Origin: Dimorphilus gyrociliatus
Taxonomy: Eukaryota; Animalia; Annelida
Length of the DNA: 64,000 bases
NCBI GenBank assembly: GCA_904063045.1
Contig: CAJFCJ010000005.1
Span: forward strand, 1,999,988-2,063,987
Direction of reading: 5' to 3'
Below, piece after piece: positions 492 through 58,249 of the stretch (position 1 is its first letter; every line of letters starts with the position of its first letter). Below the pieces are notes generated by a model. That model was not told where the DNA came from. It saw only the letters and a list, made by a program, of their open reading frames with translations, and made no database searches. The position numbers and the translations under genes were made by a program.

Positions 492-3400
492 TCAAGCTGA
501 AACATTCCATTGGAGAATTGAGGTATCTTTACCACCAGTTGAGAGCAGTTTAGAATCATCATGAACAAATTGTACATTTGTTACATGAGAACTATGACCG
601 GAGAATGTGTGACAATTAGCCTATTTGAATGGATAATAGAAAGATTTGTTAAATGCTATTTCATATCTATAAGATTGAAAAAGAAAGATACTAACTCTTG
701 GCTGATAGCAGGGATATCTAAAAAGATTAACTTTTCCAAAATCATCGGCACTAGCTAATAAGTTATGAGCTCTTGGAGCTCTGCAACATGCATTGATGTC
801 AGTACCATCTGCTCCTTCGGGCCATATTCCTAAATAATTTGTTAATTACAATGTTGAATTATAACTGATTTAATAGAATACAAAAAAAATGATAATTACC
901 GCAAACATTGAAGGCTAATGTGCAATTATTCGTTGCCCATTCGACGTCACGTAATTGGGATACACTTGAAATTTGCTTGCAATTTGCGCCGTTCCCTAAT
1001 GAAAATATTACAATTTATTTTTAGGTGTTTAAAAAAAGAAAATGCCAACTAAATATTTCTACTAACAGTATAATATTTCATAGTCTCCTGAGTTGGATTG
1101 CAAATACTGACTATCAACTGACCAATCAATATGTGTCACGAAACTGGAATGACCCTAAGAAAATTGTCACGATAGTAATCAAGACAATTAATAATAATCA
1201 ATGTAGTACCGAATGTACTTACAATACAACGACCAACTCTTGAATATTTGCGACCTTCTTCTGTGATATTATAAACATAAATGATGTTATCTCTACTTCC
1301 AACTCCTAAGTAGGCGCCATCTGGTGAAAAGGATAAGCACTCAATCTGCTCATTTCCGTCAGTATGAGATGAAATAATCTGTTGTGACGCAATTTCAAAT
1401 ACTATCCAACGACCAGAATTTAGTCCAATAACAAAGAAATTTCCATTTGGGTGGAAAATTGCGGAGTGGGCACCTTCTGGAACGCATTTTTGCCAAACAA
1501 TTGAATGTTTATGAGCATCCCATAGGAAAACATTCTAAAAATGGAAAATTAAATTATACCATTATGGAGAAAGAAATTGTCAGTTGTATTTAAGATGTAT
1601 AAATAAATTACTTTGTCCTCTCCTGCCGTTAAAAACTGATGCTGAGTTGGATGAACAGCCAAACCCCATAATTCTTCAACGTGACCATAAACAACGGGAC
1701 TCCATTGTAAATCGAAGGAACCCATAAGAATATTATTCTTAGTTGTTCCCACAATAATTTGCGATCCTTTTTCACAACTCAACATTCTAATAGATCCATA
1801 AACTTCGTCTAACTTTGAAGAAGCAGTTTTCTTATAATTAGCATCCCATTTTATAATATTTCTATCCTTTCCACCAGACAAAAAGTTTCCATCAGGAAGA
1901 GAACAAATTGTAAACACGGTTCCATCATGAGCATTTAGTATGACATGTGAAATTTTATTCGTGCCTGAAAAAATTCGATAGAACTTTTATATTAAAAGGT
2001 ACGAAAAACAATCTTTCCAACATGGCAAAATTTGCAGTAGGAAATCCTTTCACACATTTATAAATAATAATGAGAAATAAATTGAATAAATAAGTGAAAA
2101 CTTTAATATACTTCAGATATATAGAAATGATGAAAATATCTTTTTCTTTTTTTATCTAACTTTAGATACTAACAATCATTAAAGTTGGTTATGTTAAAGA
2201 AAGTAAACAACCAAATATACATTTAACTATTCCTATATTATATAGTATATACAGTATATAATAAAATATATCTAAAAAATTGTCTCATTTTTTTAAGGAG
2301 TACGTTCTAGGCCTATTGTTTACAATAGTTCCCCCTCTGTCAACACGAAAAATAATACTCTTTTCACGTTATAACTATTATTCGATAAATATTTTCTACT
2401 AATACATAAATAGATTTAAGATTTTTGAGAATGTTAAATATCTAGGTCAAATTATCAATAGTTTATTCGGTTGTTTCATTTTGTTATGATTATATTTCTC
2501 TACTTCTGTTTTCTTTTTGCAAAAGTTTAAATATGTATACTAATATACAGTATATATATATATATATATTTATTTAGATTATTAGTTAGTTAGTTAATTA
2601 ATTAATTAGTAATAAATTGAATATGGAATATATTAATTCTTGTGCAATAAAGGTAATAATTGAATTGATAACACAAACACGCAAAAATCAAATGATAAAA
2701 AGGTAAAGTGAATAGTTTTGAAAATTTTTGTGCTTTGTCTTTCAAATGTAATTTGAATATTTTTTCCTAATAATCGTCTAAGAGATATAATATACCAGTT
2801 TATATATTAATTATATAAATATATAACTACAGAAACAAATAAGATAATCTACAACAAACATGTTGAAAAAATATTCCAACTAAACTGTTTTACATTCGTA
2901 ACAAAAAAAGGGGAGAAAAATGGAAACAAGCAAAAGGTAAGCCTACAAGACAAGCATTCTTACACCAGTATCCCTTACCTTGTTCTAATTGGGCTGAGAT
3001 ATAATTGAGGATATATATATATAAATTGTTTTGTTTTTTTTTTAAATATGGTCCAAGTTTAGTCTTTAATTAAACTTATTTTATGTGTTAAATATACAAA
3101 AAATATCTTATTTAATTTTGTATAGTTTAAGGTGTTTTTCTATTTTTATAAATGTTATTAAACATAGTTGTGGCATATAAAATAAATAGAAAAAATTATA
3201 TATACCTCGTCCCCATATTTGAATATTTCCATTAGAATCCCCCGACATAACATCACCATTCGAAGCGAAAGCAATACAATTGACAAATTTTGGCTTCTCG
3301 TGTTTCTATTTAGATGAAAGGTAATATTATATAATAAAGAAAAATAAGTCTTTTTCATGTAAACATACTTCGTAGATTCCTTGTTTTTTTGTTAAAATAT

Positions 3401-6400
3401 TATTTTCAAAATTCCAAAAGGAAATATGTCCTTTGCCGCAAGTCACAATAATATTTTTATCACCTGGATGAAAGTCACAAGCTAAAACTGGGTCGGCAGA
3501 TGTCTATATTTATAAAAAAATAGATATAAGTATGTGTATATTCAGTTATAATTGATGAAAATATATATTAATATAAATATTGTCGTCTACCTTGGACTCT
3601 ATTAATTTTGTTTCTTTTTGCCAATGCCATACTGACATAATATGTTCGTTTGCTTCGTCAACAGCACATAAATATTGGCCACCGTCGAATTTCGAAAAAG
3701 CAATACAAGATACTGCTCTATCAAAATGTCCAAGACCAAGTACATGCAATGTTTGTAAACTCAATGAATTCCAGATTCTAATATGGGGCTGTAAAAAGAA
3801 TATTAAATATATGTTGAAATATATTTCAAATTGATAATTCTAACTAATTCAATGGAGTATAGTATTAGTTAATTTGAAAATGTTATATAGTTAAATCCAA
3901 ATACTCTGAAATGACTACAACTCTAATACAAAAGGAAATAAATGAAAAAAAAACACCGGTTAAGCAATGAGATACATATAACAGATATAGTTATACTGTA
4001 CAATTAAAGTTTACGTTGTTATATAATATATTAGGTTTAATTTCCTTCTATAAAAATAATGTTACATCATCTCATTGCAATGTTTGTAATAAAAAGAAAA
4101 TAAATAAATAAAGAATTGAGAAGTGAAACTAACGAAAGAGTGGAAAAATCAGTTATAATTGTTTTTGCTTGTTTGTTTGCTTTATTTATTTTTTTAAAGA
4201 GTACTACTAATAGACCCTTTCTCACCCAATTATCTCCAGGTTCTATCAGGTCATTATTGGACCTTCGTTTGTGGTAAATTGGGAATTGAGGCTGTGTAAA
4301 TAGTATATAAAAAAGGGAAAGGAAAAAAATAATATAAAGAATATTATATAGTGCACCTAATCCAAAAAAACAACTAAAATTTTGAATGATAATTTTGAAG
4401 GTTTGGATTGTTTGATTGAATTAAAAATAATAAATTATTATAACAAGAATAAAAAAAATGAAAACAAGAATAAAAAGGAAAACCTTATAGTTCAGGGGTT
4501 GTTGAATATCTTCTAAGGACAAACAATAAGGGTAAACAAAACGATAAAAATTTCGTGTTTTTACACGCATTTATCACGTTCACGAACGTATACTTTGGGT
4601 GTGAGTTTACCAAAAAAAAAAAATAATTTGAATAGTACTAACTTTGCCCTCCTTTTTGTCATGTCCAGCAACTTGCCCGCTCGCTATTGTAATTTTATCG
4701 GGATGAACACTTAGGGATTTTACATCATCGTTATGACCAGTATAGTGTCGCTGAATTTGCTCATCTACATTGTACAAAACAATAACTGCGGCTATGAAAT
4801 ATATCATTTCCCCAGTTGGTAATAAGTAAAGATTGTTCCTGCCATCGCGGCCTCGATAGCCGTAAGCCCATTCTAATTTTAACTTTTCTACAGGTGATGC
4901 AACAGGCTTAGAAGGATTAAAATCCGTCATCGTCGTAGGAGCATACATATTTACAGCTCTGCCTCTTAAATATATACGTAGGATTCGCTCATCTGTATAA
5001 ACAAACAAAACCCATAAACAATTTGTACATTATTAATCCTTCAGAAACTAATTACAAAATTACTTTTGAATAAGCAATGAATAAGATATAATCAAAAATA
5101 TTTTGCGGGGGAAATTAACATTTATCTTCCTTAAGATCTTATTCTTACCTCTCTTTCTATCGTAAATTAAACGATGTTGAACTAAAATAAAGAGAGAAAT
5201 GGGAGCAAAAACAAAAAAAAAAAAAAAACAGAAAGTAGGACAAAATTCTATATATACTATTTAGATGATGTATAAATTTATAAGAAAAAGTACGATTTTC
5301 TTACCTGTATTATAAGTGGCCTCTCTTAAGCTGTTCAAAAAGAAAACATACGAAAAAGAATATAGAAGCTGCTTTATCAATAGGAAAATATATATAATTT
5401 TTAGCCGTTATAAATTTTACAATTCAAATTATCTAAGAGAATAAAAAAGAAGTTGGATAGAAGAAAATAAATCACCATATAGATTATTCAAGATATGAGA
5501 AAAATTATGAAATATTATAGAATATACAAGATATTATATATCTTATATATGAATATTAACAAAAAATGCCCAAAAGAAGGTGTTAATTAAGCATAAAATT
5601 AAAAGATTTAATAAATCTGAAGCTTGTTTTTATTTTGTTTTTTTTTTTGTAAATTTGGGTTTTTACTATTTTATTCATTTGATTTTTGCTTTACCCTCGT
5701 TTTGGTGTTGATATTCTTCCAGTAGAATAAGGTATTATTAAATTTCCTAACGATTCACTAAGCCTGCATTATATAATACAAAATACAGTTTTATATATAT
5801 ATAGATATATATATATATATATACAAGGTTACATCATACAATCTATTCTTTATAATTGTATACTTATACAAAAAAATTTTGGTATTTAGTTAGAAATTAA
5901 TTGTTCTTTTTATGTTTTTCTAATACTTTAATAAAATTTATAATGCACTTTTGGAAAAACAAAAACACAGGAAGAAGTTATTGAATTCGTCGATTTAACG
6001 TTACTTTTATAGTTTCCTAATACTCTTTATTATAAAATATATTTATAAAAAAATTCTATTCTGTCTTTTATATATCAAGTATTTAATCACAGCTTTCTAT
6101 TTATCTAAAAAAGAAAAGTAAAAGAGAGTAAAGGTTGTGATTGTATGAATGAGAGAAAGGGAAAACGAACATATATATATATCTAATTTATACAGGAAAC
6201 GTTTAAAAGCGTATACAGAAGGGGGCAAAAGAAAATAATATTTCTCGATATAAATAAACAGTCTTTCTATAGAGATTTTCTATTTTGTCACTGTGCTTTT
6301 TTTTCTATAGAAAACTTTGATTGGTAATAAACCTGTTTCTAATTCTATAATAAATACTATTACTATTACAGCTACTACTACTACTACTACAACTACTACA

Positions 6401-17916: not shown

Positions 17917-17931
17917 CCGTCAGATGGCGAC
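17917..17931 (+). promoter_or_regulatory. CTCF-type motif CCGTCAGATGGCGAC between the divergent KIF21 and iGluR-like starts
   Basis: Matches the CTCF core YAGRKGGCR; one of 11 copies in the window; binding not shown. Confidence 0.55.
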
Positions 17932-18069: not shown

Positions 18070-21000
18070 ATGTTTTACTATAAACAACCTATTTTAAGCC
18101 TATCAGTTTGTTTATACATTACCCAGGCTAAATTATACATAGGTATGTTTTTAGTTATTTCCGGCTACCGTATTCGTTATATCATCAATCTTGCATAAAA
18201 ATCTCTTTTATTTTTAAATAAAAGCAATTGAGAAAGAGACAAGGTTAAACAAGGGCCACTTAAACGATATGTTAGATTTCTTATCTAAAAAGTATAAGCT
18301 TACGGAGGAAGTTTCTTTGATGTTTACCGATATCGGTAATGCGTTGCAACATTCTAAAAGTACGTATTCAATTAGAAAGAATAATTATAATTTGATTTAT
18401 ACCGCTCTAGATTTGGATAAGGGCATAACCGCTTTTATCAATACAAGATACGACTCTCAAACAACTATACGTGAATTCTCAAGGTCCATTCCCTTCCCTG
18501 TGTTTACAATTACACGTAACGTTGACGAAACAAGACCGTGTTCTTTTTTCGAATGTTCTTTTTTATTGCAAGTAAATAATCTTGAGTAAAAAGACTAACA
18601 AAAGCAAAAGACAATAATTCAAACTGCTATCGAATTCGTTTTTGTTATCATTATCATGTTTATTTATTTATAGACAATTAGAAGTGCGAAAGAAGAGCTA
18701 GAGTATTATATACATTTCATAAATTATCATAAATGGAACAAAGTTGCTCTATTAACTGGTAGGGAATTTTATCCAAAAAGAACAATAATTAATAAAAGTG
18801 TTCTTTTTCGTTAAGTTTATATTCTTATTCTTTTTTTATTATTACTATTTAAACGTATTCATTTGAAAGATAAACGGAACGATCTTTTGGACTTTATCGT
18901 TGGTTTAAAGTCTCATGGAGTAGTTGTTAAGCTTTGTTTAATAACAAACGACCAACATTCGATAGTGAATTGTTTAAAGAAGATAGAAAACCAGGGTAAT
19001 TTATAGACTTTAATAGTTTTATTCTGATAGCAGTAATTACAATTATTTTTAAAATATTACTATCCGAAATGGACGTAAAACATAAAAATTTATATCTTTT
19101 CGTATTTTTACACATTATAGATTTTAGGATAATACTATGCCGAATACGATCTGACAATTTGGTTAATGTCTTAAGGAAAGCTTTTGACCTTGGATTGTTT
19201 GGGGAAGGGTGGGCTTGGTTATTAATGGGTGATTTTCTTTCCTATAGGGTTGGTTGAAAATAATAATAATAATACTAAAACTCGTTATTTCTGCTTTATC
19301 TCCTTTAAAAAATCTTCATAGAATGTTATTGAAGATTATAAGAGAGAATTACAAGGTTTATTAGGATTTACTCAATACAGTTTAGATTCTAGTGATAGAA
19401 GAAGAAAATTTAATCAGATATATCCTTACCTTATCAATTCGACAGAATTGTGTTTCGATCTCACCTATAAATGTGTAATTTATTTTAATATTCTACTAAT
19501 ATAATGTTTTTTACTTTCTTTACAACTTTTAAATTACTTTATTATAAATCAGTTCCTACAAATGGGCGTTGCTGAATTATTAAATATACTAATCAGATCA
19601 TTAAGTAACAATCAACTTATTAAATATCGGAATACAAACAAGTTTAGGATGAAATTTGTTGAAGAAGTTAGTAAAGTTAGTTGTTTAATTGGAAGAGATA
19701 ATTGGAGAAAGATAATTATTTGCTATCCTTCTTAAATAGTTTCAGTTTGGGGGCATCTTAAATAAACAAATTAGACTAAAGGCCTCTAAATTAGCTAATT
19801 TACAAAACGAAATGTTCATCCTTAATTGGCAAGATGGAAAAATTAAAACGGTTTTGTCAATTAATATTATATATTGTCTAATAAAAACTTAACGGATAAG
19901 TTAATGTTTTTCCAGATAGGAAAAATTGAGTTAGACTCCAATACACAAAAATACAGAATGACTATTACGGACTTTTTACGCTTTCCTGGTAACGCGAAAA
20001 GTGTATCGTCCAATCAGGGGAGACTTATAGAAGAGTTACGTAATAGCGTCATAAAAATTGGCTTCGTTCAGGTATAAAAAGAAAATACGCATAAGAAAAA
20101 ATTCCTTTTTTATACAAGTAGATAAATTAACCTAATTTATTCGTTTATTTTACAAATAGCAACCTGGTAAGATAAAAAGAGATATATTAGGAAACTTCTA
20201 TGGTTCCCTCTTAGAGTATACATTTTATGTATTTATTATAAAATATACATATATATATATATAAAGTCTATTGAAAACAAAGAAATTTTCATAATGTTTA
20301 TATTTTTTCTAATAATAAAAACAACAACAAAACTAGATGAAAAAGAAATTCAAATTCGATACAAAGTTTACATTGTATCAATACTTCGGACAAGTTGATT
20401 TGTATGGTAGATGGACAGGATATCAAGGTGGTGTTGACACTGGCGTAAGCAATAATTAGTTATATATTATAACAAAAAGATGTGAATTAAATAAATTAGG
20501 AAATTGATATTGGAGCTGCAAATGCAATAATTACTAGGAAATCTAATAATATCCGTGAAATAAAACCCTTCACTTTGCACTATTACGCAATCCTCATCCC
20601 GTCAAATTGGTACATAAGGATTAATAGGATTGAGTAAGATTGTGTAAAAAGAATAATAAAATTTCCTCATTTGTTTTTCTTCTAGTCCAGCCATACTTCC
20701 GTTTCAAGGTGCATGGGTTTACATTCTCATCGCAATCCTACTATTAACAATTAGCACAGTTTGGGTAAACAGCATTTGCTACGATCTTAACCGGGTCAAT
20801 TCCAGCAAATCTCTTGACTCTTTAGACGCCTCTTCGATTGTCGATTTAATCCCTCTAGAGAATAATAAATGTCCAACATGTCATTCCTCATCGAATATCT
20901 TCTGGCTCTGTTACGGTTCCTTAGTTGGACAGGTAAAATTATTTATTACTCTTCCTGATTGTTACTATAAGCTGCTTTGAACCGTATTTAGACATCTAAT

Positions 21001-21939
21001 CTATATCCTAGCTGTAAATTGGCAAGAGCTATTATGACAATGTGGTATATTTCGGTTTTTCTATTCCAAGGCCTGTATATAGCAGCGATAGTTACCCAAT
21101 TTAGTTTGGAAAGCAGTCGCGGGGATGAAAAATTAATAAATACTATTGAGAGATTAATAGAGCATAAACACTTAAATATTTGTTGGCACACGAATAGCGT
21201 TGTAACGGAACTTATGAGAGAGTCTTACCCGAATAGAACAGCCTTTATTAGGCTATTAGAAAAAATTGAACAAACATCTGGAAATAGATCTCTCACTGAA
21301 TGCGCTGAGCTTGTGGCCAATTCATTCGATACAGAACCAACTGTATTAATGATAACCGATTATGAAGAGGCAATGGAAATACGTAGAAAGTATACATGTA
21401 GCGAGATGAATATTATTGAGTTGAAAGGATTTATTCTACTAGCTGGACTTCCTTATTCAGCGTCTTTTAAATACGCCGATATTTTTACTCAGGAAATGAA
21501 TAAAATGAAAAGAGATGGAATTTATAAAATGTATGAACCCAGAGAAGCTTGCCCTGCCCAAATAAGATTAAATTATTCAGTTTCAATCGGTCTCACAGCA
21601 ATTCGTCACTTCTTAACATTAGCAGTGTTAACGGTTTTCTTATTGCCATTAATAGGCGGTATTTTAAAGGTTTTTTATAATGCCTATATTCTGAAATGGA
21701 GATTATCGAGTACGGATTTAAAACGATTGAACTTTTTTTATATCGTTAAGATTATTAGTTCCGTTAAGCTGTTACAAGGGTTATACACGCTAACCCATGG
21801 AAGATTGTCCAAAATGATAGAAAGGAGATTACAAGAAAAGAATGGCATATTAAATTTTTTATTAAGAGTTGCTTTATTCAATCAAGAGAATGAAATCAAT
21901 CCGTCAGATGCCGTTAAACTGAACCCCCTCCCCCTATAG
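18070..21939 (+). CDS. Divergent ionotropic glutamate receptor / ionotropic receptor (IR)-like channel with amino-terminal domain; 927 aa, 14 exons
   Basis: Exons: 18070-18142 (signal peptide), 18225-18571, 18674-18758 (HKWNKVALL), 18870-18995, 19121-19248 (RIILC..KAFDLGLFGEGWAWLL), 19322-19474, 19553-19675, 19740-19850, 19916-20071, 20160-20228, 20337-20444 (GRWTGYQG), 20500-20609 (EIDIGAANAIIT..KPF = S1), 20686-20932 (M1; FWLCYGSLVGQ pore loop), 20992-21939 (M3 WYISVFLFQGLYIAAIVTQF, S2, M4). Total 2784 nt, in frame throughout. A few junctions have plausible alternatives. Confidence 0.85.
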
Positions 21940-22684
21940 GCCACCTACCGGTCCGAATTTTCATAAACTCTTAGAAGAAACCCGTTAAAAGAGAAGAATT
22001 GAAAAAAAAAATCGGGAAAACTACATAAGCTCTTTCGACTGGTAAAAAAAAGGGAGATCAACCGCTTTTTAACTAGACTATCGCTTTAGACGAGAAAAAA
22101 AAAGAAAGAAAAAAAAATGTTCTCTTTTTTTTTTTATTTTTCTTCTACTTTTTACATTCTCCATGTCCGCTGTTCTTAATGCAACTAGGAGATTTATGAA
22201 AGAACTCGTAGTCCGTGGAACGTTTGTCTTTTCGTTAATTGTATAAATACGTGCGTATACGTAAGATTTTCCTCTCAATTCTCTCAGTTTTCTATAGTGC
22301 ACGTAAACATTTCCCTTTATGTCCCTTTTGTGTATTTTTCCCCTTGTTTCTTTTTTTATCATCTTCTTGTATTTTTTTTGTCAATTTTGCTAAACAATGA
22401 TAATAAATTTATTTAAATATAAATAAACTCAAAAGTCAATTGAAAGAAAATTCCTTGTTATGTTATTAATGGGGGTGTGTCATAGATATATACGTGGATA
22501 ATTCGTCTACAAACATAGTTTGTATAGTTTACAGCGCTACGGAGCTGAATAAAAAGAATGGGATAAATTATGGGCCTTTTTTTTTGGCGGGCCGCTACAT
22601 TTCGAGTCAGTCTGGTTACATTGTAGCAAACCGTCGCCTGGTCTCCATTCCTTTCTGGAAAACTTGGTTATTAGGGAGTGGAGA

Positions 22685-24245: not shown

Positions 24246-24248
<3 letters not shown>

Positions 24249-24289
<41 letters not shown>

Positions 24290-36211: not shown

Positions 36212-36634
36212 ATGAGAAATTGGATCTTATCAGTAGTTATCTCAAGTATATTTATTTCTACAATATATGGAAATTGTAATGGAATAACCAGTTGCTCAGT
36301 TTCAACAAAGAAGCCAAAAAGAGTTACCAAAATAATTCAAATTCATAACGAAAGTAGCTCTTCATCAATTTCGATATATTTCATCCCGATACCAATAGTA
36401 ATTATAGGAGCTGGAGTTGCAGCTGTCTGTTGTATAAGGAAGAGGTCGAGACATAATTTTTGTACTACAACTGAAAATGAAAGTCAGGAAGTTAATATGA
36501 ATAATTCAGTTAGAACGCTCCCGGACGTACCAGAAGAAGACCATGTGAGTCGTCACATCTACATCGAAATAGAGGAAGGACCTGACAGAACTCCAATTGA
36601 AACCAATCGAACTAATTGTGAAGTTGAGACTTAG
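36212..36634 (+). CDS. Intronless single-pass type I membrane protein (140 aa), paralog of 40046..40702; family not recognised
   Basis: Signal peptide (MRNWILSVVISSIFISTIYG), short Cys/Ser/Thr ectodomain, TM ISIYFIPIPIVIIGAGVAAV, juxtamembrane CCIRKR, tail with LPDVP and HIYIEI; paralog in the window. Confidence 0.8.
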   Translation: MRNWILSVVISSIFISTIYGNCNGITSCSVSTKKPKRVTKIIQIHNESSSSSISIYFIPIPIVIIGAGVAAVCCIRKRSRHNFCTTTENESQEVNMNNSVRTLPDVPEEDHVSRHIYIEIEEGPDRTPIETNRTNCEVET

Positions 36635-36955: not shown

Positions 36956-36970
36956 TCAGCAGATGGCGCT
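36956..36970 (+). promoter_or_regulatory. CTCF-type motif TCAGCAGATGGCGCT
   Basis: Near-perfect match to the canonical CTCF motif, ~320 nt downstream of the 140-aa gene. Confidence 0.65.
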
Positions 36971-37870: not shown

Positions 37871-37885
37871 CCTACAGATGGCGCT
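37871..37885 (+). promoter_or_regulatory. CTCF-type motif CCTACAGATGGCGCT
   Basis: Strong core match, same orientation as 36956. Confidence 0.6.
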
Positions 37886-40045: not shown

Positions 40046-40702
40046 ATGATTTATTCCAAATTGGATACATTTAAAGTCATTCTGATTGTTCTAGTCGTCA
40101 TAAATTTTACAGAACAATGTACTGATTGTTCTAATACAACAGCTACAACAACAGTAAAGGATACATCAAAAGGATCGTCCTCATTTGAATTCAAGTTTTA
40201 TTTTATACCTATACCAATAGTACTTCTGGGAGCTGGAATATCCGGTTTGTTCTGTTGTGCAAGATGTCGAAATGAAAAATACGGAGAAAACAAGACTCCG
40301 GATGATTATACTATGGAAAGATATAATGGACCCGATCGAAAAAACAATAAATACTCCATTCACGATGTAAAGAGGAAACAGAAGCCACCTGTTCCGCCTC
40401 CACTAACGACAACAAGAACTTCAGACTATGAAACAGTTTATGAGACAATAAATGAAAATCAACAAGAAATCAACTCAGTATCGGGATATTTGTCTCTTGA
40501 ATCATCTACTTATCTATACCCATCGAATTCGTACGATCGTCTACAGGCTACCGGAGATATTGATAAAGAGAAAAAGACCAATGAAAATAGTGACAGTATA
40601 AGAGATGCATCGGGTATCAGAAGTTTTGCTGAAGTAACCCTTTCAAAGCCACTGTCTACCAAACAACACAACTTTTCTGATTCTAATTCTTATAAGAATT
40701 GA
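40046..40702 (+). CDS. Intronless single-pass type I membrane protein (218 aa) with a Tyr-rich cytoplasmic tail; paralog of 36212..36634
   Basis: Signal peptide, CTDC + Thr/Ser stalk, TM FYFIPIPIVLLGAGISGLF, CCARC, PPVPPP, 11 tail tyrosines (DYETV, VYETI, GYLSL, SYDRL); two AATAAA within ~40 nt after the stop. Confidence 0.85.
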   Translation: MIYSKLDTFKVILIVLVVINFTEQCTDCSNTTATTTVKDTSKGSSSFEFKFYFIPIPIVLLGAGISGLFCCARCRNEKYGENKTPDDYTMERYNGPDRKNNKYSIHDVKRKQKPPVPPPLTTTRTSDYETVYETINENQQEINSVSGYLSLESSTYLYPSNSYDRLQATGDIDKEKKTNENSDSIRDASGIRSFAEVTLSKPLSTKQHNFSDSNSYKN

Positions 40703-44290: not shown

Positions 44291-45570
44291 CCATAGCCTC
44301 CATGCCCCTTTTTCCTAATCTTAACACGCAAGCCCCCTCCCAACGGCCCGCAAGGTATGGACGTATATGTATATTTATATATCTAGGTAGAAATATGCAA
44401 GAAAAAGAAAATATACCGCCTAAGGGTTTGTACATTGGGACACGCGTACACGAACGCGTCTGTAGCTTGTTATCGTCGCCATTAATGAACGATGTAAAAA
44501 CGGCGGGAGTTCTGCAATCATCCCAGCCCTCGATTACGACCGTTTGATCGTCCGTTGGGGCAGCTGGCGCAAAAATCCTTCTCTTTCGGTGACTCGCGAC
44601 CACCTCCTAAATCCAATTATATTTTAGGGTTCATTGCTCGAATCTATAAGCTCTTAGGCATCCAAGCGCACCTGACACGTTCGAAAACTACTCTAATAAC
44701 TATTCTTTTATTTAGTATTCTTTTTTCTCCCTTGCTTGGTCTTAATCTTATGTAATAGAGCTTCTATTCTTTCATACCGCCAATTTGTTTCGCGCCTAGA
44801 TCTTCGGTAGCGATCAGACCGCCCCGCAATTACGTAATTTTCCAACATGCCATCTGTTTGTAGGCGCCCGGCGTTAATTTTACGAAATCCATTTGTAAGA
44901 ATGGCTTGAAAGAGACCGACGAACCGACTGGAGGCTCATAAAATGTCTCCTTAGAGACTCTTTCGAATTCTCCAACACTCTACCGCCAAAGGGCCTATAT
45001 TTCGAATAATTAATTAGACGGGCGCTATATATTTGCCTGTGGAGAGCGCCGACAGTCGATTTCCTCTATCCATAGATGGGAGGGGTCTTCTTTGAAGACC
45101 ATACATAAACCTAGTTGGAGGGTAGAATGGTAAAAGAAGTATATAGTGCCCCTGTCATTCAAAACTATAGAAAAACACAATCGGCCAATCATCGCTCTCC
45201 CTTTCACAGTCACGTGACCCCCGGCGTTTTTCAATCATCAGTAAGGTAGAAAGCGGCGAAGACAGACGATCGTTGATCGACCAGCTAGCCATTTTTTGTG
45301 TTCTTTTCTACAAAGTGTTATTTTTATACGAATATATTTTTTGTATATAAAACGATAACTTTTTAACAACTGAGTGGAAAATAACCTTAAAAAAAGGAAA
45401 TTAAGAAGGAGAAGAGGACAAAAAGTGTATTTAATATACATCACTTTAGTGAAAAAAGTACTCAACTATTTACCTTTGCACTTCGTCGTCAATATAAATT
45501 GAACCAAGTTGCATCTCTACTCTCTGCTTTAGAAATCTCTTAATTACCATTGTTTTTCTCTTTTTGGTAG

Positions 45571-46713: not shown

Positions 46714-49700
46714 ATGCGTATACTAATCGTTTATTTCGTTCTTACTCTAATCGTTTCGGCCGCCGACGAAGTTCAACAAATTTATTTACACTTTACGATT
46801 GTCGAAAATCGACCGAACAATAGCCAAGTAGGGGATATTCGGTCGAAAATTGACGACCTTCGTCTATCCGACCAACTCCGATTTAACGGTCAGCCCTATT
46901 CGGATGTTATTTATGACTTGGTTCGTGTTGAGCCGACGACGGGTATTATTAGGACAAAGAAAAAGATTGATAGGGAATCTTTGCCCGGTTGTCGTAGATC
47001 AGCCATCTGTAATACGGGTATATTCGAGGTGCTAATCAAAGATATACGCAATGTCAACTTATATAATGTAAAGGTGAATATTACAATTTCGGACGAGAAC
47101 GATGAGGCACCGGAATTTCCTCAGGATAGATTAGAATTGAAAGTTAGTGAAGAATTGCCTTCGAAGGATGTGGCAACATTGCCTACGGCTGTCGATAACG
47201 ACAGTCCTACATTCGGCGTACGAAATTACACACTACTTCATCAATCAACTTCCCAATCCAAACCATTCAAGCTGTCAAGCGTAAGTCAGACGTCAGATTT
47301 AAAATTGATGCTCAAGGACGATTTCAATCTGGATAGGGAAACTGCTCCTTTTTATAAATTGACTTTATGGGCTGACGACGGCCTACATCGAAACAAAATG
47401 GATATTAACATTGAAGTTACGGATTTTAATGATAATGCACCAGTTTTTGATGCAATACCGTCGGCTATAAAAGTAAAAGAGAGTGTAGAACAAAATTCCG
47501 TTATCTACAAAGTTCGGGCTCAAGATAAAGATACCGGAGATAATCGTCGGATAACTTATGCGTTCGACAGCGAGACTAGACAACAGTACGGCCATCTGTT
47601 CCACATAGATGATAACACAGGAGAAATAACGAACAAGAAGGAAATAGATAAGGAGAAGCCGTATTATACCATTCGGTTAGGAATTATCGCCACAGATAAT
47701 GGTCAACCAGCTTTATCCTCTACAACAGCTGTTTTTCTCGAGATAATGGATGTAGATGATAACAAACCGGATATAATCGGAGAAAGGTCCTTCTCAATAC
47801 TCGAAGAGGAGTTAGATCAATCAATAGAGTTCACAATACAAGATCAGGATTTAACAGCATTCACTAATTTTACCTGTCTAGTCGAAAAGTCATCGTCGTC
47901 ATACGACAAAGTAATTTTAGAAGAAACCTTTCGAAATTCAGGACGTAATTCGGTTAATTATAAGCTAACATTTACAGAGAAAGTAGATAGAGAAGAAAGG
48001 CCTGAACTAGCAATTAGAATAACATGTATTGAGAATAATGCCGATAGAACAAGAAACACGATATCGTTGAAGGTTAAAATAGAGGATAAGAATGACCACG
48101 AACCGAAATTTTCTAAGAATTATTATTCAACAACGTTATTTGAGAACGAAAACCCAGGGAATTTGATCACAGTTACTGCCACTGATTTGGATACTGGAAG
48201 TAATCGCAAAATTACCTACTCTATTGTGGAAGATGATGCTCAATTTTGGTTCCAAATTGATCCATTTACCGGTGTCATAGGCGTACGATACGCTTTCGAT
48301 TACGAAGCTATTAGTGATCGCAATAAAAAATTTACTGTAATGGCTAAAGATGGGGGACAGGAGCCTCGTAGTTCAACCGCGACTGTTCAAATTACCATTA
48401 AGGATAAAGATGACAACGACGTGCAATTTATCACTGATACTTTTCATTTAAAAGTTTATGAAAATAGGCCTAATGGTACAATAGTCGGCAGTATTATAGC
48501 AACGGATGCAGACTCGGACGAGTATAACAAATTTTTCTATTCGCTAAATAATAGGAACTTCCTTATCAATTCTGTGACGGGAGAGATCGTTACAAGGCAA
48601 ACGTTAGACAGGGAAAGTAACGAACGCTACGTGCTTGAAGCGTTTGCAGAGTCGAAAGATCGAAATTTTCGAACGACTTGCTCAGTAATAGTAACAGTAG
48701 GAGACGAAAATGATAACAACCCTATGTGGACGTTTCCTGTTCCAGGAAATAATACATTACGTATCAGTACCGATATCAAGCCCGATACGGCTTTCGGGAA
48801 AGTAGAGGCAAAGGATTTAGATAAAGATGTCAACGGGACCGTATCATATAGGATTAAATCTGAACAGTATAAAGGATATATAAGGATTAACGAATCATCC
48901 GGATATTTATACGTTGTCGATGATCTAACCGCTTTCTCCAATAAATTATTGAAATTGTCAATCGAAGCTAAAGATGAGGGCCAACAATCGAATGTTAACG
49001 AAACTACACTGGAAATCGCCGTTAATCGATCAACCGTTAAAAAGGATAGCAAGAATCTGGTAATCGTTATAATCGTTGCAGTAATATCGGCTCTGCTTGC
49101 ATTTGCATTGACTATAGCAATAATCTTTTTATGTCGAACGTCACCCCGAACGGATAATATCAAGACGCCGAAATCTAACGTTCTAACAATCGATTCAGCG
49201 CATTTTGACGGAAGTTATGACAAACGACAGGCGGTAAGTTCTTTCTTCTTTTATTCTTTACCTATTAGCAATTTGAAAAGAGCACCTTTTTGGTATTAAA
49301 AAATAGCCTGTATGCAGATTAATTCTTTATTTACAATTTACGATTTCTATTTATATAAATATTTATAAATTATTTATATATTTAATAATATTTATCGCAA
49401 AGTTAAACTTTGTTACATTTTACAACTAAACAAAAAGATAAAACAAGTCAACTTGGTACAGATTTTACGAGTTTTATCCATTGAAAAAAAACCCATTAAG
49501 ACTTATGTTACATTGGTTGAAAAAACATTCCATTCGAACTAGTTTTCAAGAAAGAATATCCTGTTCTTTCGCTAACAAACATATATCTATGTATTGTGTA
49601 AAGGTAATTTCAACGCGGTCAACCAGTGCAATAATTTTTGTACGAACACCCGCTCTCCCTTTAGAAATATATTTTCAACTAGTTCGACCCATTGTGGTAG

Positions 49701-52212
49701 GGCCAACCGACGCTAGTTTAATTATCAGAATTGAGCTAATAGCCTTCTCCTCCCTTCCCTCCCCCCCCCTAACTAAAATTCTATAGTTAAAAAATCCCAG
49801 GGATGCAAAAGATAGGTTATAAAGAACGAGGATAACGAACTGTTTTCCCTTTTTAAATCATTTTTACCCATAATGCCGTTCGGTTACAAGTAGTAAATAA
49901 ATAAATAAATATTGGTTAGGTTATTCAGTAAAGAATAAGTTATTTCTATATTGTGGGCGGGAATGGGTGGTGTCGAGTGTAAATTCCTTACAGTTACTTT
50001 ATCATTATTAGTTACAAGTAAGATTGAAAATTAGATAAAAATTTTGAAGAGCGCGGATATTTTCAGCCATAAAAGAACTTATAATTTACACGTTGAGACA
50101 AATTTTTTTTATTGACACGGGTTGTAAAACACCGATATAAAAGTTTTTCAACCAACCACGTACGACAAACAGCCGCTTAAGGCTACTCGTATTATCGCCA
50201 TTGACCGTTGTCCACTCATGTGCTGTCGTCCGTAAATGTTTTAGGAATGAAAGAAAAAAAAGGTGATATAAGCCTAACAAATGGGGGAGGAAACGGGGTC
50301 AAAGTAATTAATCACTTTTATAGGTAACTTTTAAAGGGCTTTAACTTGTCGGTTTAAGGGTGTGAGAGAGCGAAGAGGAGAGAGGGAGAGAGGTATTGGA
50401 ATGAAAGAAAATAGAGGTTATGTGAAGGCAGGCGGTCTTTCCCTGTTAAAAGAGCTGTAATAAGTTTCGATCGTAAGAAGAGAAAAAAACATAAGGCTAA
50501 AGGAAAAAATAATGCTTTCGCACTAATTGATAATTAAGAGAAAGCGGGAGGAAGCTTCTCGAATTTTTTTCACCTTAATCCTCTTAAGCAGGACGACGTT
50601 CTGTCAGGGTTAATTAGACGTTGTTTGAGAGTTTTGGTCAGCGAGCGTTTAAAACACTCATTTCCCATCAACGATTAATCGATACTTAGTTAAATTCGAG
50701 CAATCGTCTTACTAATGGAAAGGTGAATGAGAGGAGAGGAGGGGAGAGAGAGAGGGAGAGGGAAGGAGAGAGAGGGCAGAAAGGTGAGAAAAAGAACGAC
50801 AGAAGAATGAGTGAACGAAACGGCTACCTGTATAAATTACCTGCGTTGCCAGGGCAACCGTGCCGATTGATGCAGCACCTCGAACATCTGTATATCGCGC
50901 CTTTTGCTTTGTTTGTTTGTTGAATGAGCCGCCATCGTCCTTTCCCTCTTGAAAACACAAAATGAGGTACATAAGGTTATTTTTAAATACCAGCGTAAGA
51001 CATCAATCGGGCGTCTCCCTTTTAAAAAATAATGTAATTTATCCGGTCAAATTTAGTATGCAGCGTCCTCATTAAATGAGTACGAGTTTGACCCTTATAA
51101 ACATCGTACAGAAACGTATGTCTCTTCCAGCTCGACGGATATCCGTGAATGGTATAATTAAAACGTTAGTAACACTATTCTGGCGTTGAATAGGGTGTGA
51201 TGAACATTGTTATTTTTACTCGTACTCTTCTATTCAATAATGTTTTAGAGCTAAAAGACATTATTAAGACAACTAAGAGCATAATCCCATCCCGTTCGAC
51301 AGTTCATCTACTGCCTACGCCTCAGTGCATATTAGCTAATCATGCTATCTATTATATAATCGACGCGTCCTTTAAATATCTATCTTTAGGTTACGCACCG
51401 ACCAGACGTCGCGATCGTGCGTTTCCGAAGGCGTCTCGTGAAAACAATTACGTAATTATTAGAAACCCTATTACATGTCCCATCGTATGTAGATAGCAAA
51501 AATAGTATTGGACTACCATTAGTGTTCTATACAAAGTAAAGAAAAATAGTCGGAGAATTGTACTAAGAAGAAAGTCACATATAGAATTAGGATCTTATTT
51601 CAGTTGGCTTACAGATATTCCTTTAAACCGCTTCTCACTGATCCATGCTTGCATTTCACACCGAACTTTTGTTTTTTATTTAAACAGCCGAACTATCCTG
51701 GAGACGACATCTCGTTCAACTCGATATCTAACGCGTCAGACAGCGGAAGAGGCTCAAACGATGATCCAGATGCCGTTCAAAACTCACCTGTAAAACTATC
51801 ATCGGTTAAGGAACAATCGGCAATTGACAATCCTGGCTATACAATTTTCCCTGAGAAATTAGTTAGAGGTCGGCTGTATTCAAATTCACCAATTCTAAAT
51901 GCCTCGGGGGATTCGTCAATGAGGAAATATAACGTTAGAATTCCAATCGCACCACCCGTTTCTAATTCACCGATTTTAACCGAGTCAGAAGAATCATCAA
52001 TTAGGAAGTTTAACATCAGAGTTCCTGTTTATCGGACCGATTCAAATGACGAGAGAAGCCACTCGCCATCGTCTGTTCGAGCTCACCGAACCGAATCAAA
52101 TTCATCTAAGCATTCAGTTCATCCTCATCCTCATGCATTGGCTATACATTACACACCGGCCATTACAAACGAAAAGTTTACCGAAGACCCTATAGTTCAA
52201 AGCATCGTTTAA
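46714..52212 (+). CDS. Protocadherin 1 of a tandem pair: 7 cadherin repeats, TM, cytoplasmic tail with DSGRGS motif and C-terminal QSIV
   Basis: Large exon from ATG 46714 (MRILIVYFVLTLIVSA) to 49233 (GCG|GTAAGT, phase 0) with DENDEAPEF, DFNDNAPVF, DVDDNKP, DKNDHEPKF, DKDDND, DENDNNP linkers and TM LVIVIIVAVISALLAFALTIAIIFL; terminal exon 51688-52212 (CAG acceptor, phase 0; SNASDSGRGSNDD resembles protocadherin CM1). Extra small exons are not excluded. Confidence 0.92.
50845..50858. promoter_or_regulatory. RFX X-box GTTGCCAGGGCAAC in the protocadherin 1 intron
   Basis: 13/14 match to the palindromic X-box GTTGCCATGGCAAC. Confidence 0.5.
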
Positions 52213-53504
52213 AAAGCTTCAATCGACAGTATTCAAAAAACAAACAACTCAATTTTCACTGTTTTTCGCAAGTTTCTGTGTATTCTGTGTTTTTTCTCCT
52301 CCTTCTCCTCCTCCCCTAATTGTACAGTTGTTAAAAATGACAGTTCTTTTTTTTTTACCCAGTTTTTTTTACGTTTACCCTGATTATGTATTACAAGATA
52401 CTTTATACCGTTTTTTTTATATATAGTTATTTATTTTATTCTTTAGTCATAATGCGATACGGGTATATAAAGGAACGTCTTTATAAGAGAAGCTACTCTC
52501 GATCTATGTAGAGGCAAGCAGGCGTTTGACAGACCGCTGAATGCGGCGACCCGCTCCCATTGTAAAGAAACATTCTTCAACCGCCAATTTCGCCTTCGAA
52601 ACTCTTTTAATCGGCATCCAGGCGCCACGCTGAGTGCGGCTTGTTCGACGAGAAAACACTCGGTGCTAAAGAGGTTTAGGTAAAAAGTTAGCGATTGAAT
52701 ATTTCTCTAGAGAGAAAGGAGACTTAAAGAGGTGAATCCTCTTCGTTTAAGAGATGATTAAAAGAAGAGAATAATTAGATAATAATGCTGGAATAAAATA
52801 ATCGTGTTATAAACTATAAAATTCCTCTTGTTCATGGAACAGCTGCCAAGCTCTATTGTTCTTCGCCTGATTAGCGCACGGTACTTAGAAAAGCGAGGGG
52901 TGGTAAATTGCTATAAAGGGGGGGACGGGAAGTGGGAGGGAGAGACGTTGTACGCGACGCCATTAGCGATAGACGCCTTGTCAGATTTCAAGAAAGATAC
53001 GGGCGAGAACTTTCGTGTCATTGTCACTCATGTCAAGTTTTCTTAAAAAATAAGTAAACTATATGTTTTTCCCTTTTCATAAAGTCAGTAATAACTAAAA
53101 AGAAGAAAGAAAGGGAAGAAATGACAGATCAAAGCCCATAAATAATTATCTTATAAAAATCTTTATAAAATATGTAATGTTGTGTAAGGTTTGAATAGTA
53201 TTCCGGACTGATATGTCGCGTACGGGTAAATTGATATGGTATATTGGTACGTTATTGCTTAGATGAACTTTTTCTACAGTTGTAAAAAAACTTTAATAGC
53301 TCCAAATATTGATTAGAGTTTGTGTTTTTACTGTTTTTAATAGCTTTATAACATCAGCCATACGGTTTGTAATTAGGTTAGAGGACTTATGCGTGTGTAA
53401 TATAAGTACGAAATAGATGCGTGAGGTCAGGAGACGACGACGATTTCAGGCACGCGATACTACAGAAAGGAAATATTAATATAAATCTATATAATACCCA
53501 TATA

Positions 53505-54971
53505 AAATCTTTTAATATTTCTTCTTTCCATTCTTATAGTTTAGAAATGAGATTTTCCCAATTGTAAAAGAGAACTTTGGCAACACATTAAAAAAAGAGA
53601 ATCTTTTTAAAGGGTGCAAATGCGGAACGCGTGGCTTTCAAATCTGTCTCCCCCTCTCACTGTCTCTCTATCTATCTATCTCCTTGTCACACTCGCTTTC
53701 CGTGCGCTTCCTACGATACACCTTTACAATTTTTGATTTTTTTCTCCAATAGATGTCCTCATGTCGCTTGCTTTCTTGAGTAGATGGCGCTTGACAAAAG
53801 TAAATAGAGATCCTTTTCACCCTCAATGTTTTTAAAAGCTCTTTAATAGCTTGAACACTATTGTATAGATAAAAGATAAGTAGTGCATTAGTAAGACTAA
53901 TTTGTGATTTCTGGTGTTTCACGTGAATCATACAAGTTATTTGCTATCTTTTTTTTCCTCCATAACGAAAGAATTCATCTATTATACATTAAAATTTATG
54001 ACAAAATTCCATATTAAAATTGCAAAAAAGCTCGGTAATTTCCTCCCCAGTGAGTAGGTGGGAGTAGGAAGGAAAAAGTAGAATTAAAAACACACGATTC
54101 CCCCCTTCTTCATACTTGCTCTTCTCCTCGAGATGAGTAATAGACTAGCTTGGAAAAAAAGAAAGCTGGTAACGTGTAAGATGATTCCTTGACACGACGT
54201 CATACGAAAGATTTCGCATAACGATATCTCAAGAGACAGAACTCTGCAGATTTGCCTAATAGGATAATTATCTATAGTGAAAGGAATGCCTGAAGTAAAG
54301 CGATTGTACAGAATATAATCGTGGAGGAAACCTTGAGAAAGTTGCACGCAACATTATACCATCCAGTTGAATAATTAGTGTTTCTCTTTGATTTACATAT
54401 ATTGCTAATAGTAATTAATCATTTTTAACAAGATTCTAATCAAATAAGTCATTTGTAAAAAAATCCCTCTTTTCCATATAAGTAATCTTTCTCTCTGATA
54501 ATTTGCATCTTTCCGCTTCTCTGCCTCTCTCTCTCTCTCTCTCTGTGTATTCAGAGATTTTTGATAAAAGTTGGAATATACTTTTATATTCTACAATTAT
54601 AAAAATTCCATCAATAAAAACAGATTCTTTTTTAATAAGTCCATTGTGGTAACCTTTTTTCTGCTATTTTATTGCGAATTATTGTACTTTTTTACTCATT
54701 TTATAAACTAATTTACCCCATTATTTATATTTTATTAATGATTAACCTTTAACAATAGCGATTATTCATTGTACTATTAAATTAGATGTGACACTGAGAA
54801 GAAAAGATGAGATATATAACTGGTATATATAAATGCCTGGAGGTAGAAGAAGAAAAAGAAGAAAAATAGATTCTTTTTTTAAATCTTTCTTTTTATTTTC
54901 CATTCTTATAAAAGTAATAATAAAAGATATTTTCCAATTGTCAAATAAGAACTTTGCCAACACATTAAAAA
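53505..54971 (+). repeat. Diverged direct duplication of ~91 nt (53505-53595 and 54881-54971), each copy followed by a CTCF-type motif
   Basis: Shared aaatcttt..ttccattcttata..gat(a)ttttcc(c)aattgt..agaactttg(g/c)caacacattaaaaa; repeat offset 1376 nt vs motif offset 1387 nt. Confidence 0.65.
53777..53791 (+). promoter_or_regulatory. CTCF-type motif TGAGTAGATGGCGCT
   Basis: Core match between the two protocadherins. Confidence 0.5.
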
Positions 54972-55163
54972 TAGATTTTCTTTTACTTTATATATATATT
55001 ATATATATTAATATACGATCGTTAAGTGAATTTGTGCATTCATTCATCCATCTATTCTTTCTTTCTATCCATTTAAAACTTATTACCCGTATTTTTTTTT
55101 GAAAGACTAAATAAGTATGAAAATGATAGGTAAAAGTAAACAAATAAATAGATTTTTGTATTA

Positions 55164-55178
55164 ACGATAGATGGCGCT
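55164..55178 (+). promoter_or_regulatory. CTCF-type motif ACGATAGATGGCGCT
   Basis: Core match between the two protocadherins. Confidence 0.5.
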
Positions 55179-55696
55179 TTTTATTGTAGAAATCTTGTTT
55201 TAGTAAGTTATTGAGTTGTCTCATCCTTTAGTTTTTCACCTTCCCGTGTGAAAACTATTTATAAGGTTATTTTATATCTTATCGCTATAACTTTTTCCTA
55301 CGAGTTAATCGTTTCAATAGTTTAACACTAGGGTGGGAAAATCGAAAGGTCTACTTTTAATAGGCCTCTTGTATATGAAAATTTTTTTTCCCACCGCCTA
55401 CTGGGGCTGCTTTGTTTAATCTCCCAAAAATAAAGTTAATTTATCCATTATTGAATTTATAAAGCGGTTTTTTTTAACAGCCATTAATAGCCTAATACGG
55501 CGGGTGATGTATAAATGCCGCAAGGGTAATTGACGTTCAGTTAATCTTGCAATTGAGTGGTCCCTGTGTAAATATTGTAATTACGGTAAATAAAGGAGAC
55601 AATAGCCGGGGGGCTGAAAAGGAGAAAGAGAGACAGAAAAGTGAATATAATGAAAAATAAACTAGGTGTCTCCACCCCTGTTCAGTTTCTTTGTGA

Positions 55697-55711
55697 GACG
55701 CCATCTGTTGG
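55697..55711 (-). promoter_or_regulatory. CTCF-type motif CCAACAGATGGCGTC (minus)
   Basis: Strong match, opposite orientation to 55164 and 58235. Confidence 0.6.
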
Positions 55712-57384
55712 TTTGAACACTGATGGAACGCTTCTCGTGTAAACGCCGCTGCGGGCAAATTAACCGTAGCGGAAAATTCATCAATGAAGTATTCATGTTA
55801 CGAAGATTTCAATACAGCTGGCACTAATTTATTTACCGTATATCACAAATACCTTTGTAAAACTTAATCGGTCCCTAGACGCCCTTCAACGTACGCTTAT
55901 GTTTGAATTGCAAAATAAAAGACGCTCGATAAACTAAACTAACTTTACGTTATTACTTATAATGTACTCACGCCGGTAGACTAACAACTTCTCATTAGGC
56001 AAAGTCATTAGACGCTTAGCTAGAGACAAAAGAGGCAGCAAAATATAGTTCATATATTAGGTGTCGACTACAACGATTTTTATAATAAAAAAAAAAAGAG
56101 GGAAGACGACTAGAAAACGAGCGGTGGAATGAAGAAAAGAAAAGAAAGTGGGAAAAAGGGTCTATTGGGAAGGATAAGAAAATCTAATAAATACGGTATT
56201 AAAATTTTGAGGGTTACAGTGAAATAGAGTTGACGTAAGGTTCAAAGGATTTCGGACGATGGTCGGCATACAATTTAGGGCTTAAAAATTTTTAAATAGA
56301 CTCAACCATTTAGTCAATCTATATAAGTTTATATAAAGTAGAAGCTACAGAAACGAATAAACGAGTTTATTAAAGTCATTAGATGGAAATATATTTTTTA
56401 TTGGGTTTTTATTGTGGTATGAAAATGAGAAGAGACCTAGTTTATAAAAAAAAGTTAAACCGTGCCACGAATTACTAAACGCTCGTCCGTCACGCGTCTA
56501 TATCGATGAGCAGAGGGGAAAATAGGAAATAATTCGAGTAGTCACTCTACCGTGAAATGTGCCTGTTACGCAACAAGCGGATTTTCGTTAATGAATACAT
56601 TTAGCGGATTATCGACAAAGATATATGATAATAATAATATATAGTTCCGTATATATCTGTATTTATAGAATCTCTTCAGATATGTAAAGACGAATATATA
56701 TATGTTTTAGTATTTAACTTTAAATACATATATAAAACTACTGTGTATAATACAAACTGTATCTCTTACAAGTAAAAAGTATACACTATCTACAGCCTAT
56801 TCGGAAGTACTCAGTTAGAAATTCTCTTTTTTAAGGAATAATAGGCAAAAACAAATCAAATATATCAAGCAAATAGTCGTCTATATTAGCCGAATTAATA
56901 CCTTAGATAGATATCGACGTTTTTACAGCCCCAGCAAACAGTCGTTAAAGGCGAAGGAATTCCTTGAGCTGTATGAAAATTAAATAGCAGTGGGCGTTCA
57001 TAAAACGCAAATCACCCCGACTTAATTAGTTTAAAATAACCCTGCTCGGCGATTACTCGAATACTAATACGTTTGGATAAAGTTTGTGAGAATGATTAAA
57101 GGCTATAATTAGTTATATATACCCCTCCTTTTACTATTTACGAGGAATGCCAAATACCGGCAAACGCAATCCGTCAATAATACTTGTATAAACATATCGG
57201 GAATTGAGATGGAGTTTGTTAGGAGGAGCGGCACGTTTAAAGCAGTCTGTAATCAACTCCGATATTGATCGTTCTCGTTCCTACAAGTAAATCACTTTTC
57301 CTTTCTCTTATCCCTATCAAGATGAGAAAAATCGTGAATAGAAGAAAGAAATAGAGCGAGAGATCGAGAGAAAGAAAGAATAAA

Positions 57385-57416
<32 letters not shown>

Positions 57417-58234
57417 CAAAAAAAAGGGAAAAGAAGAAAGGAGAGAGGATAGTGTATTCTGAGACAAAAAAAAGAGCAAAAGAGTTTTTTGGAAGAGAGA
57501 GAGAGAAATGAAAATGGGAAAAAGTATAAAAAAAAAACAAATAAAAATTCGCCGACCTATTGTTTTGGATTTGATAGAAAGTGGCATGTGCGGGGAGCGT
57601 GTTGTTGAATAGAACTAGTTGCTATCAAAAGAATGGTTTGTCACGCTCCATTGCGCCATTATTCGACGCCAATGTATTTCAACATCTTTTATTCATTTTA
57701 GCTCGAGGCGCGTGACTTTTTCGCTTAACGCACCTGTACAAGAGGTCGCCTCTTGATTACCCTATGATACTATGATAGGATAAGGATGTTAGTCACTGAT
57801 ATTCTTGTTTGTTTGGGAACTTGAATGAGTTCAACCAATCTCAAATGAAATGAACCGTACACGAACAAATAAGATTCCATTAGAGGCCCGTCCACCGAAT
57901 GGCAGTTTAGACAACAATAACAATCATTCACAGTCTATATCCTCTTAGTTAAGTATCACCTGAAATTCATCATTTTCACAGTCAACTTTATGGACCCACA
58001 ACTGAGATTGATTGTAATCGCATTTGATTATCGCTCAATCGCATTGGACAAATCTTACAATTTACTACGGAGATAACGCCGATTAGACGTTTTAAATATC
58101 ATTCTCGACACATTACCCATCTAACTGCGCTATGGAACGCTTCGCTTAACAGATGGACAATCTTGAGTCTTCGTAAATTTTTCAAATCATCACCTCCGCA
58201 TTGTTTCATTTTCAAACGCTTGACCAATCAGCAA

Positions 58235-58249
58235 TGTGTAGGTGGCGCT
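58235..58249 (+). promoter_or_regulatory. CTCF-type motif TGTGTAGGTGGCGCT
   Basis: TAGGTGGCGC variant of the core, ~2.5 kb upstream of the protocadherin 2 ATG. Confidence 0.45.

Follow-up and report, generated by a model that had tools for sequence, protein, structure and literature searches.

CTCF-type motifs without an orientation pattern at a hunchback and protocadherin locus of the annelid Dimorphilus gyrociliatus

Whether CTCF sites organise chromosomes through their orientation in bilaterians ancestrally, or whether this architecture is a vertebrate invention, is debated, and spiralians are the least sampled animals in that debate (PMC13317027, PMC10658182). The question is raised by a locus of the annelid Dimorphilus gyrociliatus that carries hunchback (hb) and two protocadherin genes, and that was analysed here as a stretch of 64,000 nucleotides (nt), referred to as the window (assembly GCA_904063045.1, contig CAJFCJ010000005.1, positions 1,999,988 to 2,063,987 of the forward strand). 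An earlier reading, made from the letters of this DNA without database searches (the sequence-only reading), had reported 11 copies of a short CTCF-like motif. It proposed that these form an oriented array which partitions the locus into insulated domains resembling those of vertebrates. We find that the motif is strongly enriched and that its assignment to the CTCF type is supported, while the strands of the 11 sites are arranged as expected by chance and an oriented, vertebrate-like partition of the locus is not supported.

The motif and its likely role

The 8-mer AGATGGCG is present in nine exact copies on the two strands of the window, compared with 0.53 expected from 100 dinucleotide shuffles, in which the maximum was two. 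The degenerate word AGRKGGCGC occurs nine times against 0.36 expected, and a search with it adds AGAGGGCGC at 33330 and AGGTGGCGC at 58240 to give 11 sites in all (Table 1; sites are named in the text by the position of their core). Ranking of the k-mers of the window against an order-2 Markov model identified AGATGGCGC as the strongest 9-mer that is neither of low complexity nor a simple repeat (7 versus 0.13 expected); a literature search for this literal word returned primer sequences alone. Taken over the window, the CTCF-type word is in excess by a factor of about 20. The descriptive part of the sequence-only reading was confirmed throughout, including the nine copies of the 8-mer, the positions and strands of all 11 sites and the C or T which precedes each of the nine exact copies. 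Its statement that ten of the 11 sites are non-coding is also correct: site 1315 alone touches coding sequence, lying across the 3′ splice site of an exon of the EML-like gene on the minus strand and the codons that open this exon (D-G-A-Y-L-G-V-G-S-R-D-N).

The similarity between the sites extends beyond the word with which they were found. Outside this seed, a C is present at position -4 in nine of the 11 sites (p = 4e-6 for a background C frequency of 0.167), a pyrimidine at -1 in all 11, a C at +8 in nine and a pyrimidine at +9 in ten. The resulting consensus, approximately YCRRYAGATGGCGCY (15 nt), can be aligned column by column with CCASYAGRKGGCRS, which PMC6746451 quotes as the CTCF consensus across the human genome. 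Allowing up to two mismatches, CCASYAGRKGGCRS itself has 12 matches in the window against 1.55 expected, and the shorter pattern AGRKGGCRS has 11 against 1.75.

We consider it likely, with a probability of roughly 70%, that the 11 sites are ordinary instances of this CTCF-type motif spread through regulatory DNA, and that they act locally and not as oriented anchors. The enrichment at this locus is an instance of a published genome-wide trait. In the D. gyrociliatus genome, for which a CTCF orthologue is reported (PMC7854359, Suppl. Fig. 8), the CTCF motif is the most abundant motif in 10,241 ATAC-seq peaks of open chromatin (PMC7854359; Martin-Duran et al. 2021, Nat Ecol Evol). These motifs are mostly single and near transcription start sites, with no clear directional arrangement, and the authors of the genome paper suggest that they serve gene expression and not architecture (PMC7854359). 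At the hb and protocadherin locus, the worm orthologue would most likely bind single sites within small open-chromatin elements, both occupancy and accessibility being predicted here. The genes concerned would be hb, the two small membrane-protein genes, a gene encoding a 680-amino-acid (aa) product and protocadherin-2, with the elements serving as their promoters, as alternative or internal promoters or as regulatory elements nearby. The effect of the sites would probably be a local one on transcription, or else that of boundaries or tethers for which orientation does not matter; a role as paired, oriented anchors of loop extrusion is not proposed for them.

Four of the sites (17922, 25080, 33330 and 58240) have a promoter-like context. 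The first is promoter-proximal: the 680-aa gene has its ATG 148 nt further downstream. At site 58240 a CCAAT box (GACCAATCAG, 58222-58231) comes first, then the motif, and about 160 nt downstream a splice donor (CAGAG/GTGAGC, 58403); the ATG of protocadherin-2 has a strong acceptor 40 nt before it, at 60752. Because of this combination of CCAAT box, donor and acceptor, the sequence suggests that the region at 58235 is a putative promoter with a non-coding exon 1 of protocadherin-2, followed by a 2.35-kb intron in the 5′ untranslated region. Site 25080 has a TATAAT 12 nt upstream and CAGTT directly behind it, with a donor (GTAAGT) at 25302. A textbook acceptor comes before the hb ATG, and the site may mark a distal first exon of hb. 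Site 33330 lies 127 nt upstream of the ATG of a 481-aa hb isoform, present in NCBI, which starts in exon 2 (33457). It is situated between a block of about 110 nt, nearly identical in a related species, and the conserved TATAATAG, after which comes the exon 2 acceptor. The conserved block in intron 1, together with the NCBI isoform, suggests an internal (second) hb promoter at 33230-33427. These promoters, which we infer from their sequence context, fit the published pattern of CTCF motifs close to transcription start sites.

Several observations weigh against this interpretation. Seven of the 11 sites are more than 1.5 kb from any annotated start codon, so that the description "promoter-proximal" depends on predicted 5′ non-coding exons and applies to some sites only. 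The motif is matched to its factor by similarity, and CTCF occupancy and open chromatin at the 11 sites are likewise predicted. Conservation was tested at two of the 11 sites, one of which (33330) is in a region which is 73–90% identical in any case. The density of sites also varies strongly between loci. A second D. gyrociliatus protocadherin locus, that of DgyrCDS1729 (CAJFCJ010000002.1:3647114-3683587), has no CTCF-type site in 36.5 kb, and motif density is therefore uneven; the 12.3 kb beyond the end of the window include one near-match. DgyrCDS1729 spans 16.5 kb and has gene-free flanks of 10 kb.

A different role is conceivable, in which the sites are orientation-independent boundary elements of the fly type, possibly acting with partner proteins, and separate neighbouring regulatory landscapes without loop extrusion. 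The interval upstream of every one of five plus-strand genes (the 680-aa gene, hb, a 218-aa gene, protocadherin-1 and protocadherin-2) does hold at least one strong site or near-match, and CTCF in Drosophila works at a restricted number of boundaries, that of the Hox cluster among them (summarised in PMC10658182). However, the match upstream of protocadherin-1 is a degenerate one, several sites appear to be embedded in promoters rather than placed between domains, and gene expression is the role that the genome paper prefers (PMC7854359). We regard it as unlikely.

It is more doubtful still that the resemblance to CTCF is coincidental and that the word has another binding factor, for instance YY1/Pho or a further C2H2 protein, or combines a YAG 3′ splice site with an ATG-GCG start context. 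The worm sites and those of YY1/Pho do have ATGGCG in common, since AGATGGCG includes this YY1 core, sites 1315 and 17922 come after acceptor-like pyrimidine tracts, and the factor is assigned at these sites from sequence. Yet YY1 (AAGATGGCGGC) requires both an A at -1 and a G at +8, after GGCG, and neither is found in any of the 11 sites. The YY1-type word AANATGGCG is not enriched in the window (2 versus 1.9 expected), and the full YY1 consensus at up to one mismatch has a single match against 0.28 expected. The C at -4, the pyrimidine at -1 and the C-Y at +8/+9 are features of CTCF, and the ATG of most sites is not followed by an open reading frame. Since the flanking positions fit CCASYAGRKGGCRS and the YY1 patterns are not enriched, the assignment of the sites to the CTCF type rather than the YY1 type, as the sequence-only reading had made it, is supported.

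Orientation of the sites and the two protocadherins

If the sites formed an oriented array of vertebrate type they would be anchors of loop extrusion, with convergent pairs enclosing an hb upstream domain and divergent pairs insulating hb from its neighbours and protocadherin-1 from protocadherin-2. Some general considerations are in favour of such an array: the motif is of the CTCF type and the species is reported to have CTCF (PMC7854359), several sites are located where the intergenic DNA is unusually long (9.5 kb and 8.6 kb) and adjoins developmental and neuronal genes, and what part CTCF motif orientation plays in spiralians is still called unresolved (PMC13317027, PMC10658182). The arrangement of the sites does not bear it out. 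The ten pairs of neighbours comprise two convergent, three divergent and five tandem pairs, compared with 2.5, 2.5 and 5 expected for random strands, and are thus exactly at chance; the probability of three or more divergent pairs is 0.5, and when orientations are assigned at random, about 89% of the outcomes have at least one convergent and at least two divergent pairs. The division between strands (seven plus, four minus) is unremarkable (p = 0.55), as is co-orientation with the local direction of genes (8 of 11, p = 0.23). In addition, the pattern had been chosen after the data were seen.

The gene structures do not support the array either. The divergent pair 33330/36961, described as separating hb from the pair of membrane-protein genes, in fact encloses hb exon 2 and the 3′ end of hb and is not a gene boundary. 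The pair 1315/17922 spans the whole kinesin gene. The third, 55699/58240, is intergenic, between the two protocadherins. The literature points the same way, as the published analysis of this species found no directional arrangement (PMC7854359), orientation dependence is absent in echinoderms and flies, and the echinoderm work argues that orientation-dependent looping is a derived vertebrate feature (PMC13317027). The sites are also spaced by 0.5–16 kb, far below the size of vertebrate loops. Given the orientation statistics, the gene structures and the literature, the partition is not supported, and we hold an oriented array of this kind to be very improbable. A scaled-down version, with oriented anchors acting over kilobases and with the DNA upstream of hb and that between the protocadherins each forming a miniature insulated loop, would push orientation-dependent loop extrusion back to the protostome-deuterostome ancestor. 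It is neither required nor favoured, because the orientation pattern equals the chance expectation, and we give it hardly any credence.

The sequence-only reading had also appealed to the clustered protocadherins of vertebrates, where CTCF site orientation directs promoter choice. In the worm each of the two protocadherins is a gene complete in itself, separate from the other and with 3′ tail exons of its own; the cytoplasmic tails show no relationship (best BLASTP E = 0.02). The annotated gene structures contain no variable first exons joined to constant exons in common, and without such a cluster the analogy has no substrate. The site at 58235 on the plus strand lies at the putative protocadherin-2 promoter; upstream of protocadherin-1 the degenerate near-match at 44557 is the sole candidate.

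Retention in related species and the genes of the window

Two related species were reached through short Logan contigs, which made retention testable for two of the 11 sites, and both are kept; this carries out a check that the sequence-only reading had suggested. The core of site 33330, GGCGCCCTCT, is intact in one relative (contig L003, run SRR23372229, approximately 81% identical) at the same distance from exon 2. As its surroundings are 73–90% identical anyway, this is weak evidence. At site 36961, AGATGGCG together with the C at -4 and the pyrimidine at -1 is found at the same offset in the other relative (contig L007, run ERR14224706), in which the flanks are 57–59% identical and contain indels, and its retention is a modest sign of constraint. 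A further contig (L002) starts inside hb exon 2 and reaches no site. Searches with the N-terminal part of hb exon 2 and with the protocadherin-2 exon returned, respectively, no close fragment and no close orthologue from relatives. Two apparent similarities were discarded: the first 200 nt of L003, considered as hb exon 1, are a GA-repeat, and a 39-nt match of transcripts from a relative to 25311-25349 was dismissed as chance in AT-rich sequence of low complexity.

The flanks of the 11 sites (100 nt on either side) have no similarity to each other, which indicates a short motif and not a dispersed repeat, nor do they share a second motif at a fixed offset. Although the window is AT-rich and its k-mer ranking is dominated by low-complexity words, an explanation of the excess by chance, base composition or a dispersed repeat is refuted for practical purposes, since no shuffle reached even three copies of AGATGGCG, the site flanks are unrelated, the flanking positions of the motif hold independent information and two sites are kept in other species.

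The gene layout was taken from the annotation of the contig and from Pfam scans, and spliced models were searched exon by exon (Table 1). Scans of the window for Rfam families and tRNA genes gave no hits. A 140-aa open reading frame (ORF) shares a transmembrane segment with the 218-aa gene (BLASTP E = 3e-10). It is absent from the public annotation; polyadenylated transcript contigs (L008-L010) were found in one related species and a genomic orthologue (on L007) in another, and it looks like a real, unannotated gene. Two further words are over-represented in the window. The palindrome TAGGCCTA, most copies of which are non-coding, is present nine times where about 0.65 would be expected. Half-sites of it are found some 40 nt downstream of two of the CTCF-type sites (17922 and 29398), and it is possibly a second regulatory word. 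For the AT-rich palindromes of the TATACAGTATATA type the count is 18, compared with about 3.8 expected, and introns of the EML-like and kinesin genes hold most of them; they may be microsatellite-like or represent the termini of a small mobile element.

Table 1. CTCF-type sites, near-matches, genes and other over-represented words in the window. Core gives the position of the core word, followed by "exact" for copies of AGATGGCG.
Feature	Positions	Strand	Core	Sequence	Remarks
CTCF-type site	1313-1327	-	1315, exact	TCACCAGATGGCGCC	best fit to the vertebrate consensus (1 mismatch)
CTCF-type site	17917-17931	+	17922, exact	CCGTCAGATGGCGAC	in the ~1.1-kb gap between KIF21-like kinesin and 680-aa gene
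CTCF-type site	25075-25089	+	25080, exact	GCGATAGATGGCGCA	6.3 kb upstream of hb ATG, in the 9.5-kb gene-free interval
CTCF-type site	29396-29410	-	29398, exact	TCGGCAGATGGCGCT	highest position weight matrix score; 2.0 kb upstream of hb ATG
CTCF-type site	33329-33343	-	33330	CCGACAGAGGGCGCC	hb intron 1, ~90 nt upstream of exon 2 acceptor
CTCF-type site	36956-36970	+	36961, exact	TCAGCAGATGGCGCT	327 nt downstream of 140-aa ORF
CTCF-type site	37871-37885	+	37876, exact	CCTACAGATGGCGCT	2.2 kb upstream of 218-aa gene
CTCF-type site	53777-53791	+	53782, exact	TGAGTAGATGGCGCT	1.6 kb downstream of protocadherin-1 stop (52212), in the 8.6-kb inter-protocadherin interval
CTCF-type site	55164-55178	+	55169, exact	ACGATAGATGGCGCT	intergenic, 5.6 kb upstream of protocadherin-2 ATG
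CTCF-type site	55697-55711	-	55699, exact	CCAACAGATGGCGTC	intergenic, 530 nt from site 55164-55178
CTCF-type site	58235-58249	+	58240	TGTGTAGGTGGCGCT	between the two protocadherins
Weaker near-match	31808-31822	+		TGAACAGACGGCGCC	~35 nt into hb intron 1; absent from the sequence-only reading
Weaker near-match	44557-44571	+		GGGGCAGCTGGCGCA	2.1 kb upstream of protocadherin-1 ATG
EML-like gene	up to ~5 kb	-			Pfam matches on neighbouring exons
KIF21-like kinesin		-			ATG at 16983
680-aa gene	~18070-21939	+			ATG 18070
Gene-free interval	21940-31426				9.5 kb, by annotation
hb (hunchback)	31427-34902	+			ATG 31427; 606-aa product DgyrCDS3594; intron 1 ~31773-33427
140-aa ORF	36212-36634	+			unannotated
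218-aa gene	40046-40702	+			DgyrCDS3595, by inference from neighbouring CDS numbers
protocadherin-1	46714-52212	+			ATG 46714
Gene-free interval	52213-60791				8.6 kb, by annotation
protocadherin-2	60792-66352	+
Palindrome	2308, 6643, 17959, 26282, 27114, 32501, 39709, 48465, 61841			TAGGCCTA
AT-rich palindromic words	2251, 2547, 6890, 8115, 9067, 25623, 38835, 41630 and others			TATACAGTATATA type

Comparison with known systems

The worm sites resemble the vertebrate CTCF core in the C at -4, the pyrimidine at -1 and the GGCGC-Y that ends the motif, and differ from it in the central dinucleotide, which is nearly fixed as AT (10 of 11 sites) where vertebrates mostly have GG. They differ more clearly from the convergent anchors of vertebrate loops, being kilobases and not hundreds of kilobases apart and showing no excess of convergent or divergent pairs.

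In the clustered protocadherins of vertebrates, CTCF binds at the promoter of each variable exon, which loops to a distal enhancer. The worm protocadherins are similar in having large single ectodomain exons, in their tandem position on one strand and in the CTCF-type site at the putative protocadherin-2 promoter. They are different in lacking shared constant exons, in being two genes and not an array, and in having a degenerate match alone upstream of protocadherin-1, and the other worm protocadherin locus is without sites.

Drosophila CTCF sites, which are orientation-independent, often promoter-proximal and true boundaries in few cases, share with those of the worm an invertebrate setting and the absence of an orientation rule. 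The fly CTCF logo presumably also has an A or G followed by T at its centre, like the worm motif. In flies, CTCF acts with partner proteins, including CP190, BEAF-32 and others.

What the locus contributes is a clean 15-nt species consensus with a nearly fixed central AT, the first hints that single sites are retained between dinophilid species and a set of candidate promoters, comprising the internal hb promoter and the non-coding first exons of hb and protocadherin-2. The closest known system is the CTCF pattern published for D. gyrociliatus itself. It was described genome-wide and for the Hox cluster, and not for the hb and protocadherin locus, where most sites are more than 1.5 kb from an annotated start codon. 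Species, assembly and motif class are nevertheless the same, the sites are again single and scattered at about one per gene, several have a promoter-like context and no orientation pattern is seen. The hb and protocadherin locus adds no evidence for the view that orientation-dependent architecture is ancestral to bilaterians, and provides one more example of the pattern already published for this worm.

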